A DNA stretch of 61,239 nucleotides, counting the filler, from Platydemus manokwari (Eukaryota): NCBI GenBank assembly GCA_037951405.1. It is 5 parts of 5 records of this genome, joined end to end, with 100 filler letters (N's around TTAATTAATTAA, not from the genome) between each part and the next. Parts side by side here need not be neighbours in the genome. Positions count along the whole stretch, not along the records: positions 10,274 to 21,057 come from JBBMOY011105775.1; 4 more parts are not named here. One strand, 5' to 3'. This document shows, piece by piece, positions 10,274 through 21,004 of the stretch. The notes beneath the pieces were generated by a model, which worked only from the letters and a program-made list of their open reading frames with translations, was not told the origin of the DNA and made no database searches. Both the position numbers and the translations under genes were made by a program. Numbering within the stretch: position 1 is the stretch's first letter; the number at the start of each line of letters is the position of its first letter.

Positions 10274-10632
10274 TCTGCAAATGGAAAATATTTTGATTGA
10301 ATTTCATTAAATAAATATTTTAAAAAATGTTTTTGTTTTTAAAAAAAAAAGCCGGAATCATTCTAATACACCTAATAATTCAGTTTACATTTACTTTTAA
10401 TACCTTAATTTTATTGATAAATTATAATATAATTATTTATTTTAATAATAATATTGACATTATTATTAATTATTATTATTAAAATATTATTATTATTAAA
10501 ATGAAAACATTAATTATAAGAAATTTTACTAAAATTATACAACGGTTACTAAAAATATCTTGATGCTATTGATAAATTATCAGATAAAATCACTAGTCAT
10601 TTATTGGATAAATCGATACTGAAATAAATTTG

Positions 10633-13083
10633 ATGATTGTGATTATTATTTATTTATTCTTATTTACATTGTTGATGATTAGTTTCGTGTATTTATCAGC
10701 ATTATTATTTTTTCTCATTTGTCCTTTCATATGTTCATCATCGAAGTTAACATCTTTTCCGAGTTATTTCGATGTGTCTTTTGGAAAATGTGATGGAATG
10801 TTTTTATTAGAATATGGTCGAATCAAGTTCAATAAAACATCCGAATTGTTTATCCAAGAAATCGTTAATTCGTCAAGTATCCAATGCCAATGGGTTTGTA
10901 GTCGAGAACTGGAAAATTGTCGAATGATTGAATATATTGGTTTGAATTGTCGATTGTATAAATCAGATTCCATTGAAATTAGTGGACCGGATTTAGTGGA
11001 CCTTTGGAAATGCCCGAAACCGGTTTGTGTTACGTTTCCCAAAAGATGCCCAGCATATTGGGTTGGTTATGACAAATATAAATCAATTAATGATCGTCTA
11101 ATTCCAGTTAATAGAATCGATAATACAACTAAATTCGAATGCCAAACATTGTGTGAAAGAAATATCAATTGTGGTTCGTTTACATTTTATTGTTTCGACA
11201 GTAACAGGTGTTCGTATTCCTTAGGCGTTTGTACTTTATATTTTGGTTATCTGAAACCGATCACGGAGAAGCTTGATTCGCAAATTTATAATGATAGTAT
11301 GACTCTCAGATGTTGTGATAATGATGAAGTATATTATAAACAACAACAAATGACGAGAATAATGGGGAAAAAATACGAGAACGTCACGGGTCAATGGAAT
11401 GTCGTCAAATTTAAAAATAAATACCATTATAATTTATCGATATTCCAAAATATTGTTGCAACGAAACTTATATGTCTTGATTACAAGGAATGTATTGAAA
11501 CTTGTTCAAAAGAGCCATTCTGTTTGACACCTATTTTCGTGAATGGTCAGATTCCAATTTGTTATTTGCATTTGGACCAAGCCATTGGAAATTTTAAAGA
11601 GTCTTCATCCATTATCGATGACATTAACAATACAGACTCTGTGATCTGGGAATGGAGAACCAATCAGAATCATAAAAACAACACTCATCAAACGTCAATG
11701 TTTGGATCATGTATATGTTTTCAAAAAGGTCGTAAATTATTCATTCAAAAATCCTGTAATTCAAAATATACAGACATTGTAGTTAGTTCAACATTAAATC
11801 TATATTTGAAAGGTTTTTTAAACGATCATGCAAGAAAAAATCAAATATTTAGTATGAGTGATGGTCACAATATGTATACAATTCGAGTCGATAATATTTT
11901 TAAAGAAGAAATCTGTGAATTTGAAAACTGTGATAAATATAGTGAGAAAATCTACAACAACGACATTCAGCAATTTGTGAACCGCACTGAATGGCTGGCA
12001 GTCAAACCTAAAGAAGAAAACCCACATAAGTTACCTGCAGATATGTTAATAATTTTGAATACATACAGACCAAATGGTCGATGCTTTTCCCGCTCCCTGT
12101 GTTCAGCATACGTTAGAGATTTTCAAAATACTCACTTTAACAAAAAATTCTCTGACATTGCTTATAATTTTCTAATAGGAGAAGATGGAAGGATCTATAT
12201 AGGTCGAGGTTGGCATCTTATCGGAGCGCATACTCGCGGTTACAATTTCAAAAGCATCGGTGTGGCTTTTATAGGTTGGTTTAAATTTGTTGAACCTAAT
12301 AGTAAAGCTTTGATTGCTCTTCGAAATCTGATACAGTTAGGAATTAAAAATAATTATTTGAAATCCAATTTTAAACTTACTACTAATAGAGCTTTAAGGA
12401 GCAGTGATACACCGGGTGAGAAGCTTTATCGTATTATAGGAAGTTGGTCTTTTATGAATCTAACAGAATATACAAGCTGCAATAGAATAGATGATGGCTT
12501 CAATTTTGCACTTTTGATAATTCCTATCGTTTTGGTATTATTTCTCCTTATTGGTATCTCATATGCATTTCAGAAAACCTTTCATTTTCACAAACCCTGT
12601 CAAAAATTGAAAAAGTACCTAACATCCAAAGAAAATAAGTTCAAATATTATAACATGAATATATATAAAATGGAAACAGAGAAAGTCAATATGAGTAAAG
12701 ATTGGATTTATTTTTGTCAGGAAATGTCTGGTAATAAGCTCACACAATGCAACTGTTTTGAATATATTCGTGGATTATGGATGTTTTGTTATATTAAACC
12801 GGAAATCAATTTCATGAACAGGCTACATGATTTGTTTCACACATTAAATTGCTCTTATATTATCAATATTTATGTAGAGAAATCAAAATCCTTAAGCGAT
12901 TCAAAATCTATTGTGCTCTTTCACATGAAATGTAACAATCCATTGTTAGATAATTCGATTCTAACAGAACTCTCGCTAGATAAATTTTGCTTATGTAAAC
13001 GATTTTTAACAAAGAAAATCCCTCAAACAAGTCATGGAAAAATGGAGAAATTCATAAACAATATTTTGCAAGAATCTTCATAA
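10633..13083 (+). CDS. Intronless type-I membrane protein: signal peptide, 3 PAN/apple-like domains, non-catalytic PGRP (amidase_2) domain, TM helix, ~170-aa cytoplasmic domain
   Basis: Open 2.45-kb ORF (ATG 10633 or 10675). PAN Cys patterns are CQWVC..NCRMIEY..CRLY, CQTLC..CGSFTF..CTLY and CIETC..FC..CYLH. PGRP motifs are FVNRTEW, FSDIAYNFLIGEDGRIYIGRGW, GAHTRGYNFKSIGVAFIG and TPGEKLY. TM FALLIIPIVLVLFLLIGISYAF lies at ~12505-12570. Confidence 0.9.
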   Translation: MIVIIIYLFLFTLLMISFVYLSALLFFLICPFICSSSKLTSFPSYFDVSFGKCDGMFLLEYGRIKFNKTSELFIQEIVNSSSIQCQWVCSRELENCRMIEYIGLNCRLYKSDSIEISGPDLVDLWKCPKPVCVTFPKRCPAYWVGYDKYKSINDRLIPVNRIDNTTKFECQTLCERNINCGSFTFYCFDSNRCSYSLGVCTLYFGYLKPITEKLDSQIYNDSMTLRCCDNDEVYYKQQQMTRIMGKKYENVTGQWNVVKFKNKYHYNLSIFQNIVATKLICLDYKECIETCSKEPFCLTPIFVNGQIPICYLHLDQAIGNFKESSSIIDDINNTDSVIWEWRTNQNHKNNTHQTSMFGSCICFQKGRKLFIQKSCNSKYTDIVVSSTLNLYLKGFLNDHARKNQIFSMSDGHNMYTIRVDNIFKEEICEFENCDKYSEKIYNNDIQQFVNRTEWLAVKPKEENPHKLPADMLIILNTYRPNGRCFSRSLCSAYVRDFQNTHFNKKFSDIAYNFLIGEDGRIYIGRGWHLIGAHTRGYNFKSIGVAFIGWFKFVEPNSKALIALRNLIQLGIKNNYLKSNFKLTTNRALRSSDTPGEKLYRIIGSWSFMNLTEYTSCNRIDDGFNFALLIIPIVLVLFLLIGISYAFQKTFHFHKPCQKLKKYLTSKENKFKYYNMNIYKMETEKVNMSKDWIYFCQEMSGNKLTQCNCFEYIRGLWMFCYIKPEINFMNRLHDLFHTLNCSYIINIYVEKSKSLSDSKSIVLFHMKCNNPLLDNSILTELSLDKFCLCKRFLTKKIPQTSHGKMEKFINNILQESS

Positions 13084-13899
13084 AGATTTCCCGGTCATCT
13101 TCAAAAAACAGAAGTCACTTTAAATATTATATATTGGTCTTTATTTATGATATTTATTATGTTGCTTATTTAGAGTTGATCGTTCATATTGTCTGCACTG
13201 GTGGTTTATATTTCGATACAGTGTGTTAAAAATGTGATAATTAATTGGTGGAAAGCAATGAATTATTTTTGAAGGATTTTGAGTTATTAATTTCGGGTTG
13301 TTTAAACAAATCCGTTTTACATTTCAGAATTTACTTTTTTCAAATAGAAGAAATAATTTTAATAAAATAACCGGATTGAGATAAGACAAGAAGTTTTTTG
13401 ACTTAATTTCATTTTAATGAATTTTAAGTATGGTTTTCTTAAATCTTATTTTAAAATTTAATTTTATAACCAAAAATAATTTTAATGAAAAATAAAATGT
13501 ATAAATGATTGATACGGCCTTTAGCAACTTCAGTTAAATATAAATTGTTACATAAAATGTTAAATTTATCTTTATCTTGTTATTATTACCTCTAGATTTG
13601 TTACATTTCGATTTTGGACTGGAAATCGTGACAACTACAAACTATTTATATTAATAAATGCTTTTAAAAATGTTTGGTTTAAATTTTATATTTTTTTACC
13701 ATTTTATAATGGTATAAAGATTAAGGATATCGAATAAAGCTCAAGCAGAATTGTTAAACTATTTCCTGTTCTAATAACAACACTGCTTACATTTGTAACG
13801 TTGTCACTCATGTAATTATTTGCATTTACAAGAAATAAACAAAATATTTATATTGCAAAAACTATAATTATATCACAAAATAAACAACACGGATAGAAG

Positions 13900-14326
13900 C
13901 CAAGGTTGTTCAAGAAACAATCGAGAAATTAAGAGAAGCTGACCATAGAAAGCAAAATTTCACTGGGTGACGACTCTTTAAATACTTGTCAAATATCTGC
14001 ATAGAGGTTTATCTCAGTATTTTTCCGGTTTTAGTATTTTCGATTCCAGCATCTTATACTTGTACCGAAAGTTGCGAAAAAGTCTTCTGAGATTTGCTTG
14101 TGTTTCAATTTTGTGATATACCTCCAAAATAACATCAACATTATTGTAAAATCATTAAAAAATATAAATTTCACGATCGGGATTTTATGAATCGGAAGAT
14201 AGATAAAAATATTGATAGATATAAATAAAAACTTCAAAGAAGAAACTGTTGACAAAAATAAACTATAAATAATCTAAGATAGTGCACTTTTATTTTCAAA
14301 TTTCGGATTTTGTTAAGGGCCTAGTA
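13900..14326 (+). mobile_element. Possible decayed Tc1-like transposon fragment
   Basis: Faint echoes of Tc1 motifs (KIFTGDDSL ~ KILWSDES; IFDSS ~ IFQQDN) and a TIR-like end ttttgttaagggcctagta. Confidence 0.25.
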
Positions 14327-14488
14327 ATATGGATTATTGTGATTACTTTACAAAATAAATTTTTAATAAGTAATAAGTTAGAATTTATAAAATCTATCGT
14401 TTAAGAAATAAAATTTTTGGGTGAACTTCTTGAATTCGTATTCAATACAAAACTATATTGAAATAGCATAGACTAATAATGATTATTA

Positions 14489-15100
14489 TATTAGATTCTT
14501 GCATAAAATCCCGGCGTTACATGAAACTATTTGTTCTACAAAAGCTTTTTGATGTTTGGCGAAATATTATATATCATTCGGAAGCCCGTGCTATGATCTA
14601 CAGGAATAAAGTTATCGTTTTTACCTATATCATTTTTTGTATTTCTTTAGAACCGTCAAATGAATTGTCAAGTCTACATAAAATAGCATTTTCAGCACCT
14701 ACTTCTTTTTGCCTTTAATCGAAACTACCACAGATATTTTGCCTTGCATGGAGAGGACGCTATAGCTGACAGAACTGTTCGGGATTTGTTTACCATGTTC
14801 AAAAACGTTAAGTTCGACCTCAACGACGCTCTTCGTTCCGGAAGACCAGTCGAGATGTACGAGAACCAAGTCGTGGATATTTTGAAGGAAAATTCTCACC
14901 ACGGATGTAGAGAATTTGGCGAAAAGATGAATTGAGATTTTTCTTCAATTTTAACTTCAGTCGATGGATTTCACTCAAAAGCTTGGAGTTTGGATCCCGC
15001 ACGAATTCACCCAAAAACAGAAGAATAAACGGTTAAAATTCCTTGATTTCTTTTAAAATAAATGTTTAAAAAACGCGGGAACTAATTCAACAACTCAATA
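14489..15100 (+). mobile_element. Internally deleted mariner element
   Basis: HTH GEDAIADRTVRDLFTMFKNVKFDLNDALRSGRP, and LGVWIPHEF (WVPHEL motif) at ~14983-15009. Diverged TIRs tattagattcttgcataaaatcccggcgtt and aacgcgggaactaattcaacaactcaata. No DD34D domain. Confidence 0.85.
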
Positions 15101-17597
15101 GATATTTAATTATCATTATTATTATAAATTATTAATAATTATTATTATAAATTATTAATAATTATTATAAATAAATATAGATTTATCTACAAATTTTGTT
15201 GACACAAACTAATGAGAATAATCTTATATAATTTAGATTAAAATTAATTTCCTCATATTATATTTTAAATATTTATAAAATCGATATCAATTTTCTAAAT
15301 GGTGTTAGAAAAGTTATCAAAAGTACCAACCTACTTTTGACAGTTTAAGTTCCTAGCTATATTAGCATTTGATCACACTGGTTATGGATAGATTTTAGAT
15401 AACCAAACTTGCTGGGTTTTATGTAGCTTTTATCAATAAATTTACCATTGTAGAAACTGATAAATGCACTTGTTGCAGTTTAACCCAACAGGCGAGTTCT
15501 TTGAAATTTTGATAACCAAAATATGTAAGCAATGTATCATACACGACCTCAAATCAATCAGACAACTTCACCTTAACTTAAAATTTTAAATTAAGTAAAA
15601 TAAAAGTAATAAATACTATAAATTACCTTCCTAGTCAAGAACTTCAAAAGGCTTTATTTTTATTTATATGAAAATATCAGAGATAGCAGTATAATCACAA
15701 ATTAGATGATCTACATTTGGTTCTTCAATTGTGGTAGGTTTATGATTGTCGCACTATACAAGACTTTGGTGTAAGGAAAAAATGAGGATTCTACATTCAA
15801 TGTGAGGCTTTTATTTTGAAATTTAAATCACTTATGAATTTAGATACTGTACAAATCGAATTGGAATTTGAGATTATCGTGTTTAAGGGTTTGGATATTA
15901 TTTTAGGTTTTTAGTATTATGCTAAAATTATTTAACGTTTTACCGAGTTTATCAATGAATTATATGGTTTTTCACTAATTCAGACTTTATTTTGGACTAT
16001 GGTGTGACCGTTTCAAAAATTGATACTGTTGATACCTTATTTTAGTACTTTAAACATATGCATACCTACACGACCATACAGGCGTAACAACCAGCCAACT
16101 ATAGCGGAGTTAGTTGATAAACAACAATTGGAAAAAGTGCGTTGGCCACACAACAACAAACACATAGGGATAGACTTATCCCATTCATACAGAAACTAAT
16201 AAGTCCAATAGGAACATAGAAAAGCAAATATAGAATCAAAATATGATACAAAAATTACAAGCAGACCTCGAATATAAAAATCGATGTAAAGATGACCAAT
16301 TGCCAGTTGGAAGCCAGGTTCTCTTTATGTTCTATATCAAAAACTTTACTTTTGTACTTTGTGATCTGATATCATGCAGTTGATTTGAATATTGAGTATC
16401 TACTTTATTATTCATTAGAGCTGTAGATGTCATTTAATTATAGAATCAAACATCGGTTTGCATCAGAGTTATAAACTAGAAACTACATTATGATATTAGA
16501 TATCTCTGGATTACATTTCGAGTTGCACTATGTTGAAAGTTTTTGAAACTGGTTAAATGTCGTAGCGCTTGAATTTCGTGTCTATAAAGCTTTGTATATA
16601 ATTAAGATGTCGGTTGGATAATCTCTAGAATGAAAGATAAATACTTTTCATTTCCGTGCACTCCCGACACAGTGTGACGTTGAAACTTCTATTGAAACTT
16701 TCCTTTCACTGCCAATTACCTTCACAATATAAACACCAATAAATAACACATTTTTTATGATTTCTAATGGCAACCGATCCGATTTGTTGCGATATTTATA
16801 ATCAATAGTTTCTATGTGATGCACGTGGTTAACTTCTGTTCGGTATTTCGAATTCCGATTGTGTGTGTGTTATGTGTGGCCACGTATTTTGTCAATTTAA
16901 AATTTTCGATTTACACTGATTCTGATTGATAGTTCGCATATCTGTATTCCTGCAGCCATGCGAAATATGGAAACAGAATTTCCAAAGTGTCAAATTTTCC
17001 TATTAAATATACGATGTTTATATACTCGAAATTTTTTCAAATGAAAGGGAACGGTCAGTAATCACATTAGTACTTAGAGAAACGAAATTCATGCTGGACA
17101 TTGGCTAAGAAGGTCAGTTAAGTATATTTTGAGAGAATGCTTTCCAATATTTTGCAGTTGCTCTTTAATTGATAATCTGGTTTCTCCTAGCTGGGAACTT
17201 TTTTGGTAATTCCACTGGTGGTAGTTACCTTATAAATTTCAAAATTGATTATGACATCTTTTTCCTCAAAAGAAAAGTCATAATCTAATATAGTCACGAA
17301 ATATCTCTTTGATGTTTAACCGATAATGTATTGAATATTTATCTGGTTAAGATTATATTAAAAATTGTTACATTTATTTTAAAGCATTGATCTGGAATAA
17401 AATTATAATATTGGAAACATAAAAATATTGCTAGATCGTTCTGAAAACTCTATTTGCGATAACTTAGATCAGTACTTTAAATTTTGAGAAAAATTATGTG
17501 CATAAAAGTAGAATTAATTTGAGAATTCAGTCCACGTTTATTTTTAAAATAAATTTATTCAATGAATCATTATTTATACAAATGTAATTGATCGATA

Positions 17598-18773
17598 ATG
17601 GCGGACATAAATCTGAAACCGATGTTTTTACGTGAAAATGATAGTGGACTGAAGGAAAATGATTCATTTACCAATTCTTCAACTCGACATCCCGTGATTA
17701 ATAAGATCCTGACGACTCTCGATTCCGAACCTTCTTTGGATGATTCCGATGTTTTTAAGTTGGATATTGATAAAATTATTCAAGATCTTCTAGGCAATGT
17801 TAATACTGATGACAAAGCACCATTGTCGTTGAATGAAATGCAAGCATTAGCAATTGTGGCCAGAGAACAATTCAAAAGCGAAAATTTCGTCTTAGAAATT
17901 AGTTCACCAGTTCGCATTTGTGGCGATATTCACGGTCAATTTGATGACTTGATTAGAATCTTCAAATTGGCTGGATTTCCACCAGAAAAAAAGTATTTGT
18001 TTCTCGGAGATTATGTTGATAGGGGTAAGAAAAGTTTGGAATGTATATGCTTGTTATTGGCATATAAAATCAAGTATCCTGATCGGGTATTTTTATTGAG
18101 AGGTAATCACGAATCAGAACCAGTTTCAAGAATTTATGGATTTCGAGAAGAGATAATTGAAAGATTCAGAACTTCAAAATTGTGGTGGACATTTTTAAGG
18201 ACATTCAATTTTCTACCAATAGCAGCCATCGTCGCAAATAGTATTTTCTGCTGTCATGGCGGTCTGTCACCAGAATTTATGAAACCGAAATTCCTTAGTC
18301 TAACTAAAGACCTCAATAAAATTCAAAGGCCTTTAGAAGTACCTATTAAAGGATTGATATGTGATCTTCTGTGGGCAGATCCTCTCGATCAAGTTGGCAC
18401 TTCTATTCCTATTGGTTTTCTTCCTAACGAAAGAGGTTGTAGTTGGTCATTTGGTTTCGATGTCATTGAGAGTTTTTTGGAAAAATTTGATCTGGATTTG
18501 ATCGTTCGAGCTCATCAAGTTGTCGAAGATGGGTATGAATTTTATGCCCATAGGAAATTGATTACAATTTTTTCAGCACCAAATTATTGTGGTGAATTTG
18601 ACAATGCTGGCGCGATATTTTGTTTGGATAACAATTTTACTGATGATAAGACTCCAATTGTCGATGGGGGATTTTTGATATTGAAACCACTCGTCCAAAG
18701 ACCACAACGAATGTGGTTGAAATCGATTGGTGGTGGCATAAGATCTATTAAAAAAAGTTTGAAGCTCAAATGA
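17598..18773 (+). CDS. Intronless PP1-like Ser/Thr protein phosphatase catalytic subunit (divergent paralog)
   Basis: [33 protein letters not shown] and the PP1-type [13 protein letters not shown]. Confidence 0.95.
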
Positions 18774-20386: not shown

Positions 20387-21004
20387 ATGAATCATCAAGT
20401 CCCACCATATAATCAAAATGTTCCGATATTAAGTCACACTGATTGGGCATCAATGGCTAAACAATGGGCAACTTTGAGAGCTAATGTGAATATACCACCA
20501 GCTGTAAATAAAATTGAGAATTACAATTATCACAACATTCCTCCACCTCCACCTCCACCACCATGTTTATCAATACAAAAGCCGAATACGATATACAATA
20601 ATGATTATCAGCCTATGATTAATCATGATCCCATGATGTCTTTTAATCGCAATCCTCCAAATTTGCATAATACTAATAATAATGTTTACGAATCTTCTAT
20701 GCACAGTCAATACAATGAAATTCCACCTTCAAATTTATCTCAATGTGAAACCTTTGACTACAATCATCGTGACCGGGCATTCGTTAATTACAATAATGTA
20801 AATAGTTATAGACCACCTCCTTCCACGACACCATTTGCACAAAATATCTTTAATTTGCCACCTCCAACACATCAAGATTATATCGACACACAACAAATGA
20901 AACCAAGCCCATATCTACCAGAAGTCCATCCACCAAAATTATTTCCTATTATTAATTCAGACGAATATAGTACAGTTAAAAGTCAACCCACCTACAGTAA
21001 ATAA
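20387..21004 (+). CDS. Proline-rich N-terminal part of a PNISR (SFRS18)-like splicing protein; remainder lost in gap
   Basis: DWASMAKQWATLR resembles the PNISR N-terminal DWAALAQAW motif, followed by Pro-rich low complexity. A gap begins at ~21058. Confidence 0.5.
   Translation: MNHQVPPYNQNVPILSHTDWASMAKQWATLRANVNIPPAVNKIENYNYHNIPPPPPPPPCLSIQKPNTIYNNDYQPMINHDPMMSFNRNPPNLHNTNNNVYESSMHSQYNEIPPSNLSQCETFDYNHRDRAFVNYNNVNSYRPPPSTTPFAQNIFNLPPPTHQDYIDTQQMKPSPYLPEVHPPKLFPIINSDEYSTVKSQPTYSK

Follow-up and report, generated by a model that had tools for sequence, protein, structure and literature searches.

In Drosophila, PGRP-LC and PGRP-LF are type II proteins, and PGRP-LC uses a RHIM-like motif in its N-terminal cytoplasmic part for signalling; we know of no RHIM/IMD-type link described in flatworms. 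For the planarian S. mediterranea, Kumar et al. 2026 (PMC13453010) have described four long PGRPs of about 800 aa, PGRP-L1 to PGRP-L4, with a signal peptide, PAN domains, a single PGRP domain, and TM regions. In that study the short secreted PGRPs alone keep the catalytic residues, Smed-PGRP RNAi leads to poorer clearance of S. aureus, and the route from PGRP recognition to antimicrobial response pathways in planarians is stated as remaining to be elucidated. Arnold et al. 2016 (PMC4993586) had found Smed-pgrp-4 to be induced upon Pseudomonas infection, and their RNAi screen identified pgrp-1, -2, and -3 as activators, alongside TAK1/p38 components.

We analyzed a gene of the flatworm Platydemus manokwari in a window of 61 239 nt (five parts from five records of assembly GCA_037951405.1, joined with filler), within the part taken from JBBMOY011105775.1. 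All positions below refer to this window, and all features of the gene lie on its plus strand.

A complete gene of the planarian long PGRP family

The complete single-exon CDS of a flatworm long PGRP (PGRP-L type) occupies 10633..13083. It is an uninterrupted ORF of 816 codons plus stop that begins with the ATG at 10633, upstream of which there are stops in the same frame; GC content is 0.30–0.34 within the ORF versus 0.18–0.21 in the flanks. The second ATG of the ORF is codon 15. A full-length homologue, the 801-aa S. mediterranea protein P0001, has the same layout (38% identity, E 3e-175, 97% coverage). The ORF is an intact flatworm gene. It appears in no RNA run, the one public run found for this organism being non-RNA, and comparison of the contigs of that run with the ORF yielded short repeat-like fragments only; an unexpressed or decaying gene copy might look the same in this respect, yet we give that reading almost no credence, since the 2.45-kb frame stays open though the DNA is AT-rich, conservation with a homologue in another species extends over the full length, and the structural Cys residues are all retained, each of which argues against decay.

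Two observations concern the surroundings of the gene. A PP1-like phosphatase gene adjoins it and groups within a clade (support 100/99) in which every named member comes from a flatworm. The resemblance of a short ORF at 14744-14935 to a mariner HTH has no support from Pfam.

P0001 was the only full-length homologue in a full-length word-indexed search, and a search with the PGRP region among long proteins retrieved P0001 and one two-PGRP fly protein, nothing else. Both Smed-pgrp-4 qPCR primers (PMC4993586) translate to peptides present in P0001, TLDPKVG and YFWEWTT, and P0001 is therefore the product of Smed-pgrp-4. It is the one S. mediterranea sequence compared here; PGRP-L1 to PGRP-L4 were matched by their published description. 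By its architecture and its homology to P0001, the ORF product belongs to the planarian PGRP-L kind. The domain combination, which the preliminary description had not recognized, matches that of PGRP-L1 to PGRP-L4 (PMC13453010), and the full-length homologue is Smed-pgrp-4; the architecture is thus already known from the S. mediterranea long PGRPs, and in other respects the gene adds an unexceptional member to a family already on record.

Topology, PAN modules, and PGRP domain

Kyte-Doolittle hydropathy gives two hydrophobic segments, residues 1-37 and 623-646. The first (10633..10743) is an N-terminal hydrophobic signal sequence, assigned from hydropathy and from the alignment with P0001; it has the small residues SSS directly before K38, and is 21 residues longer than its P0001 counterpart. 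The second (12499..12570), with a hydropathy maximum of 3.07, is a single transmembrane helix. Eight K/R against one D/E in the 30 residues directly after the helix place the tail in the cytoplasm by the positive-inside rule.

Three PAN/apple-like modules follow the signal sequence. Module 1 (residues 38-130; 10744..11022), with 46% identity to P0001, has six Cys (53, 85, 89, 96, 106, and 127), spaced C53...C85-x3-C89-x6-C96-x9-C106...C127; in a low-confidence model it forms a helix bearing CxxxC and then a hairpin. Module 2 (residues 131-232; 11023..11328; best Pfam PAN_1 stretch 161-195) has the spacing C139...C170-x3-C174-x5-C180...C200...C227. Module 3 (residues 276-330; 11458..11622), assigned through PAN_4, is a four-Cys core, C287-x3-C291-x5-C297-x12-C310, in which all four Cys are invariant relative to P0001. 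All three spacings fit the apple pattern. Taken singly, the modules match weakly: module 1 through its P0001 counterpart only (PAN_1, E 0.053), module 2 by PAN_1 (E 0.0036), and module 3 by PAN_4 (E 0.02), modules 1 and 3 being below threshold. At the protein level PAN_1 passes its cut-off of 21.4 bits, scoring 25.1 bits over the full length and, within the N-terminal 466 aa, 31.3 bits (E 1.8e-7, three stretches). The ESM-Atlas feature and structure neighbours of the N-terminal part of P0001 are PAN / factor XI / kallikrein-like clusters. Profile match, apple-type Cys pattern, and PAN-clan neighbours of P0001 together identify these modules as PAN/apple at the level of sequence. Between them and the PGRP domain lies a conserved middle region (residues 331-443; 11623..11961; 28% identity to P0001), which found no family match in a Pfam search. 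An AlphaFold2 model of the ectodomain before the PGRP domain has pLDDT 36.6, too weak for a fold to be assigned.

The PGRP (Amidase_2) domain, at 11962..12468, has 61% identity to P0001. Pfam Amidase_2 (PF01510) matches residues 468-580 (E 1.6e-11; score 45.1 bits, cut-off 26), and structures of PGRP-LE, PGRP-LC, and PGRP-LF match residues 444-612 (E 1e-33 to 5e-35), the best being PGRP-LE 2cb3 (E 5e-35 over 169 residues). The zinc-ligand positions are occupied by N476, N585, and T593, where the aligned PGRP-LE, LCx, LF, and I-alpha have H, H, and S; the third position is C in amidase PGRPs. In this alignment none of the amidase ligands His, His, and Cys is kept, and N476 and N585 are unchanged in P0001. 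With all three zinc ligands lost, the domain cannot cleave peptidoglycan and could, at most, be a binder of it. Both His of the groove used for binding and catalysis are replaced, and F539 sits where PGRP-LE and LCx have their DAP-contacting Arg; given these replacements, peptidoglycan binding, and any ligand specificity with it, is putative only.

The layout given in the preliminary description is confirmed: in a single exon, a signal sequence, three PAN/apple Cys modules, and a PGRP domain are followed by one TM helix and a tail of 170 aa. Its view that the protein is membrane-anchored, of type I, and combines PAN modules and a PGRP domain in one chain is likewise supported, as is the intracellular domain, which is conserved; the topology is opposite to that of Drosophila PGRP-LC. 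Such a protein is plausibly a peptidoglycan-sensing receptor.

The cytoplasmic tail

The tail (residues 647-816; 12571..13080) consists of a Lys-rich juxtamembrane stretch followed by a Cys/His-rich domain at about 690-801. It aligns with that of P0001 at 34% identity with one gap in 169 columns, a conservation on par with that of the PAN modules. Cys is kept preferentially (8/9, hypergeometric P = 8e-4), and the residues conserved relative to P0001 include these 8 Cys, 3 His, and 2 Trp. The conserved positions are H651, C656, DWIY690-693, C695-x10-C706-x-C708-x10-C719, C740, H764, and C786-x-C788-x12-H801. About 110 membrane-distal residues are conserved without indels, their Trp, Cys, and His being invariant. 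From the 169-column alignment with its single gap, we infer that the tail is probably a folded, lineage-restricted domain, possibly a metal-binding one. A tail profile searched against 1.84 billion representatives matched P0001 alone, and two sequences of the family, that of P. manokwari and P0001, were available for comparison. An AlphaFold2 model of the tail (pLDDT 42) is too weak for fold assignment. Of the short motifs sought (RHIM, TRAF2/6, ITIM, YxxM, and dileucine), none is conserved across both tails, and a regular-expression search for the RHIM core [IV]Q[IVL]G found it in neither.

Proposed function and alternative readings

What is observed here directly is the architecture and the homology of the protein, together with its lost catalytic residues and its lack of TIR, SEFIR, and RHIM sequence signatures. 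The ORF very probably encodes a type I planarian-type long PGRP with a non-catalytic PGRP domain, a PAN ectodomain, and, behind the TM helix, a conserved Cys/His-rich domain of ∼150 aa. Such a protein would be exposed at the surface of the cell or on a bacteria-facing compartment, where its PGRP domain may bind muropeptides or bacterial surfaces with the help of the PAN modules. The tail would then relay a signal or serve for sorting of the protein; its conserved Cys/His probably bind metal, and a cytoplasmic partner probably docks on it. The likely downstream pathway in planarians would be TAK1/MKK/p38. More specifically, we tentatively raise the possibility, on balance a doubtful one, that the Cys/His/Trp tail (∼110–150 aa) is an undescribed metal-binding signalling domain, confined to the long PGRPs of free-living flatworms, that links peptidoglycan sensing to TAK1/p38. 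If true, the tail would be a third solution for peptidoglycan signalling, beside RHIM (insects) and TIR.

Two other readings assign the tail to a known fold. In one, raised in the preliminary description, it would be a divergent TIR/SEFIR-type (flavodoxin-like) domain coupling peptidoglycan binding directly to TIR signalling, a reading that suits the type I single-pass topology, the roughly TIR-like size (170 aa), and the alternating hydrophobic stretches, but that we now consider highly improbable. With E values of up to 10 admitted, Pfam finds no TIR, TIR_2, or SEFIR match in the two tails, and the tail profile retrieves no TIR protein among the 1.84 billion representatives. The PDB contains many TIR and SEFIR structures, and when the same profile was run on the full set of PDB sequences, again to an E of 10, a weak CDGSH match alone came back. 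The supposed boxes are mostly unconserved in P0001: of ‘YYNMNIY’ two Tyr alone are kept, of ‘KLTQC..FEYIRG’ K, C, C, and R with the G lost, and of ‘IP...EKFINNIL’ P and L; none of the three tail Gly is conserved, and the motifs sought for the BB-loop Pro/Gly and box 3 (PG, [RK]D..PG, and FW) are absent from both tails. The AlphaFold2 model, low in confidence (pLDDT 42), has the order beta-beta-alpha-beta-beta-beta-beta-alpha, not a beta-alpha alternation. In it the predicted strands 690-696 and 705-709 are connected by 8 residues, and 741-748 and 759-765 by a 10-residue polar loop; connections this short would leave no space for the helices that cross over between strands in a parallel beta-alpha-beta sheet. 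Foldseek with this low-confidence model returned no TIR, nor do the Atlas structure neighbours of the P0001 tail include one, and an Atlas feature search likewise gave no support. The tempting annotation as a TIR-coupled PGRP lacks support and is removed. The one PDB match would suggest instead that residues ∼758-801, the last third of the tail, are related in degenerate form to the CDGSH/mitoNEET iron-sulfur domain, a membrane-tethered cytosolic metal-cluster module. MitoNEET chains match profile positions 112-155 with an E of about 0.3, sharing with the tail residues that include H..K.NP, DK, one Cys, and KK.PF, and a CxC followed by a His is retained in both tails. The CDGSH motif is C-x-C-x2-(S/T)-x3-P-x-C-D-G-x-H, with three Cys and one His as ligands; the CxC of the tail is two residues out of register with the mitoNEET CRC, its His is also offset, and the next mitoNEET Cys is aligned to T (V in P0001), so that three of the four mitoNEET cluster ligands are unmatched. 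Moreover, an E of 0.3 is near chance level, the six matches represent one protein, and Pfam zf-CDGSH matches neither tail. With a match that is not significant and ligands out of register, we did not accept CDGSH membership, and regard this relationship as very unlikely.

The remaining alternative dispenses with signal transduction: the protein would be a membrane-tethered binder. It might resemble Drosophila PGRP-LF in being a decoy or negative regulator, be an anchor of adhesion or opsonin-like type, or work as an endocytic or scavenger receptor, with a tail for sorting, palmitoylation, or turnover. Such a role is favoured by the tail, in which no signalling module of a known type and no short motif (RHIM, TRAF, ITIM/ITAM) is conserved, by the juxtamembrane C656, which is conserved and could be lipid-modified, and by the generic binding character of PAN modules; in published planarian work, too, the strong phenotype is that of a secreted PGRP, and the question of signalling is left open. 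Still, the ∼110 conserved membrane-distal residues are more than sorting motifs require, and the induction of Smed-pgrp-4 by infection, with pgrp-1, -2, and -3 acting as activators together with TAK1/p38 components (PMC4993586), speaks against a mere binder, a role that we judge unlikely overall. For the long PGRP with a conserved intracellular domain, the useful outcome is that pgrp-4 and a 38%-identical flatworm homologue share an indel-free Cys/His-rich cytoplasmic domain without detectable relatives, a concrete piece of protein for testing of partners and metal content.

Comparison with known systems

Plasma kallikrein and the factor XI heavy chain have tandem PAN/apple modules in common with the PGRP-L protein, which differs in having no protease domain and, as its module 3, a four-Cys core only. 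MitoNEET, like the PGRP-L tail, is a membrane-tethered cytosolic Cys/His module. Toll/TLR, IL-1R, and IL-17R resemble the PGRP-L protein in being type I and single-pass, and their cytoplasmic domain is globular and similar in size, but their ectodomains are of LRR, Ig, or FnIII type rather than PAN plus PGRP, and no likeness of the tail to TIR/SEFIR receptors was detected in sequence, in motif, or, with weak models, in structure. For the PGRP domain, the closest structural-sequence matches are Drosophila PGRP-LC, LE, and LF (E 1e-33 to 5e-35). PGRP-LC and LF, sensor and regulator, respectively, are non-catalytic and membrane-bound, as is the protein described here, which in contrast to them is type I, carries PAN modules, lacks [IV]Q[IVL]G, and no longer has the two His retained in the fly PGRP receptors. 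The S. mediterranea long PGRPs belong to another species, and the hydrophobic N-terminus is longer in the P. manokwari protein; yet in both species these proteins are ∼800 aa, combine PAN domains and one PGRP domain with a signal peptide and TM, and are without the amidase residues, and P0001 aligns with the P. manokwari protein end to end, tail included, at 38% identity overall, 61% in the PGRP domain, and 34% in the tail.

Gene structure and membrane topology

The gene is a single open frame of 816 codons at 10633-13083 (+), with in-frame stops upstream of its ATG and a G+C content of 0.30-0.34 as compared to 0.18-0.21 in the flanks; among public runs only one, not on record as RNA, contains it, which points to a little-sequenced flatworm rather than a model planarian. 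Directly 5' of the gene, positions 10394-10520 are ATT/TAA-like low-complexity sequence of ∼18% GC, and 10400-10510 were treated as a repeat. Hydropathy places two hydrophobic segments in the product, residues 1-37, terminating in CSSS with K38 next, and residues 623-646. The 30 residues behind the latter contain eight Lys/Arg and one acidic residue, and the region N-terminal to it holds all 10 N-x-S/T sequons as well as 31 of the protein's 40 cysteines. Together with the hydropathy, these distributions indicate type I membrane topology and place 170 aa in a cytoplasmic tail, in agreement with the preliminary description.

Membership in the planarian long PGRP family

Searching 5.8 billion proteins with the full-length sequence retrieved a single relative, P0001, a Schmidtea mediterranea protein of 801 aa (E 3e-175, 38% identity, 97% coverage) that aligns end to end with its parts in identical order. 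Identity is highest in the PGRP domain (61%), followed by the PAN/apple-like modules PAN-1 (46%) and PAN-3 (42%), the tail (34%), PAN-2 (29%), and the middle region (28%). P0001 is a nameless UniParc entry. The qPCR primers printed for S. mediterranea pgrp-4 by Arnold et al. 2016 (PMC4993586) translate to TLDPKVG (forward) and YFWEWTT (reverse complement of the other); P0001 contains these peptides, at residues 285 and 309, respectively, and the window protein has neither. P0001 is therefore the product of Smed-pgrp-4, a gene induced by Pseudomonas infection (Arnold et al. 2016, PMC4993586).

Seven S. mediterranea PGRPs have been described, three short secreted forms that keep the amidase residues and four long forms (Kumar et al. 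2026, PMC13453010). The latter, PGRP-L1-L4, are ∼800 aa and are depicted as carrying signal peptides, transmembrane regions, and, in addition to PAN domains, a single PGRP domain (PMC13453010). The window protein has every one of these features and is homologous to one member, and thus belongs to the same family; the domain combination, which had been taken as unrecognized, already exists in S. mediterranea (PMC13453010). In that species the PGRP genes are expressed chiefly in the intestine and the epidermis; infection and injury both induce them, and their RNAi impairs Staphylococcus aureus clearance, most strongly for the secreted PGRP-S3 (PMC13453010).

Smed-PGRP-L3 is described as having “two N-terminal TM domains” in place of a signal peptide (Kumar et al. 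2026, PMC13453010). A predictor could also call two such segments in the 37-residue hydrophobic N-terminus of the window protein (10633-10743 +), which exceeds that of Smed-pgrp-4 by 21 residues and in which codon 15 is a second ATG; as a lead only, the protein could be an L3-type member.

Ectodomain

The identity of the PGRP domain is beyond doubt: Pfam Amidase_2 matches at E 1.6e-11, and the solved PGRP-LE, LCx, LF, and LB and human PGRP-I-alpha match residues 444-612 at E 1e-33 to 1e-29. In the alignments, N476 and N585 stand at the first and second His of the solved PGRPs, and T593 stands at the Ser of the fly receptors, a position where amidases carry Cys; all three zinc-ligand positions are thus lost, and both Asn residues are invariant in P0001. 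The domain is accordingly non-catalytic. F539 replaces the Arg of “GYNR” in PGRP-LE/LCx, the residue that contacts diaminopimelic acid.

PAN_1 scores 25.1 bits against the whole protein and 31.3 bits, over three stretches, against its N-terminal 466 aa, both above the Pfam cut-off of 21.4. Scored singly, the modules are weak; all three have the apple-pattern cysteine spacing, and in a low-confidence ectodomain model every CxxxC lies on a helix that precedes a hairpin. The ESM-Atlas neighbors of the N-terminal part of P0001 are PAN, factor XI, and kallikrein-like clusters. Between PAN-3 and the PGRP domain, residues 331-443 (11623-11961 +) are conserved with Smed-pgrp-4 (WEW, LNLY, DG, and C433...YSE invariant), are beta-rich in the low-confidence model, and matched no family searched for; they may form an undescribed ectodomain module.

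Cytoplasmic tail

The two tails are 34% identical, and their alignment needs a single gap in 169 columns. Invariant residues include both Trp, eight of nine Cys, and three of six His (H651, C656, C695, C706, C708, C719, C740, H764, C786, C788, and H801), among which is a symmetrical C-x10-C-x-C-x10-C; conservation of Cys is enriched (hypergeometric P = 8e-4). From this conservation we consider the tail a real domain rather than a spacer. A cytoplasmic Cys/His pattern of this kind would most often denote metal ligands.

The tail had been proposed to be TIR/SEFIR-like, a reading that found no support in Pfam, PDB-profile, Foldseek, Atlas, or motif searches. At E up to 10, the window tail matches no Pfam family and the P0001 tail only LPD23, at chance level; a two-sequence tail profile retrieves only P0001 from 1.84 billion representatives and only mitoNEET (E 0.3) from all PDB sequences. 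Atlas feature searches with the tail gave nothing usable. Neither Foldseek with the window tail model nor the Atlas structure neighbors of the P0001 tail gave a TIR or any significant match. Pro-Gly, [RK]D..PG, and FW are absent from both tails, no Gly is conserved between them, and the residues assigned to TIR boxes mostly fall outside the conserved positions. AlphaFold2 modeled the tail poorly (pLDDT 42), as two strands, a helix, four strands, and a helix; 8-10-residue loops join neighboring strands in the model, an arrangement at odds with a parallel beta-alpha-beta sheet. No RHIM, TRAF, ITIM, or YxxM motif is common to both tails.

The mitoNEET match, at residues ∼758-801 (12904-13035 +), shares H..K.NP, DK, KK.P(F), and CxC...H with the CDGSH domain. 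It is not significant, its CxC and His do not line up with the mitoNEET cluster ligands, and it is probably due to chance.

Neighboring sequence

The product of a single-exon gene at 17598-18773 (+) is a Ser/Thr phosphatase of the PP1 type (Metallophos E 8e-44), extended at its N terminus by ∼100 aa. In a maximum-likelihood tree it falls in a clade (support 100/99) whose named members are flatworms only; this clade stands apart from canonical PP1 and includes several unnamed Logan/MetaClust paralogues. The closest relative of the phosphatase is P0003 (76% identity, run SRR33002330). The 4.5 kb between the two genes (13084-17597) has no ORF of at least 80 aa. A 63-aa ORF at 14744-14935 contains DLNDALRSGRP, which to us resembles mariner transposase HTH regions; Pfam gave no support for a mariner HTH there, and the ORF may be a decayed transposon. 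Near the piece edge, a 205-aa Pro/Asn/Tyr-rich ORF (20387-21004 +) with a PPPPPPPPP run matches no Pfam family; it could represent either a genuine protein of low complexity or a first exon.

Proposed function

The ectodomain may bind peptidoglycan or bacterial surfaces, with recognition falling to the PGRP domain and an auxiliary role, in binding or oligomerization, to the PAN modules; the tail, probably metal-stabilized, would dock a cytoplasmic partner. A serious rival is that the protein does not signal and instead acts as a decoy, tether, or endocytic receptor. For the signaling reading, the best candidate downstream pathway would be TAK1/MKK/p38, because knock-downs of pgrp-1, -2, and -3 scored as activators beside those of TAK1, MKK, and p38 genes in a planarian infection screen (PMC4993586). 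The report of PGRP-L1-L4 does not discuss their tails and describes the intracellular pathways as remaining to be elucidated (PMC13453010). The remaining interest is the conserved Cys/His tail without relatives, common to at least two flatworm species, which makes the question of planarian PGRP signaling slightly more approachable. As a whole, the window protein extends to another flatworm a family that was described in 2026 and of which one gene had been named in 2016.
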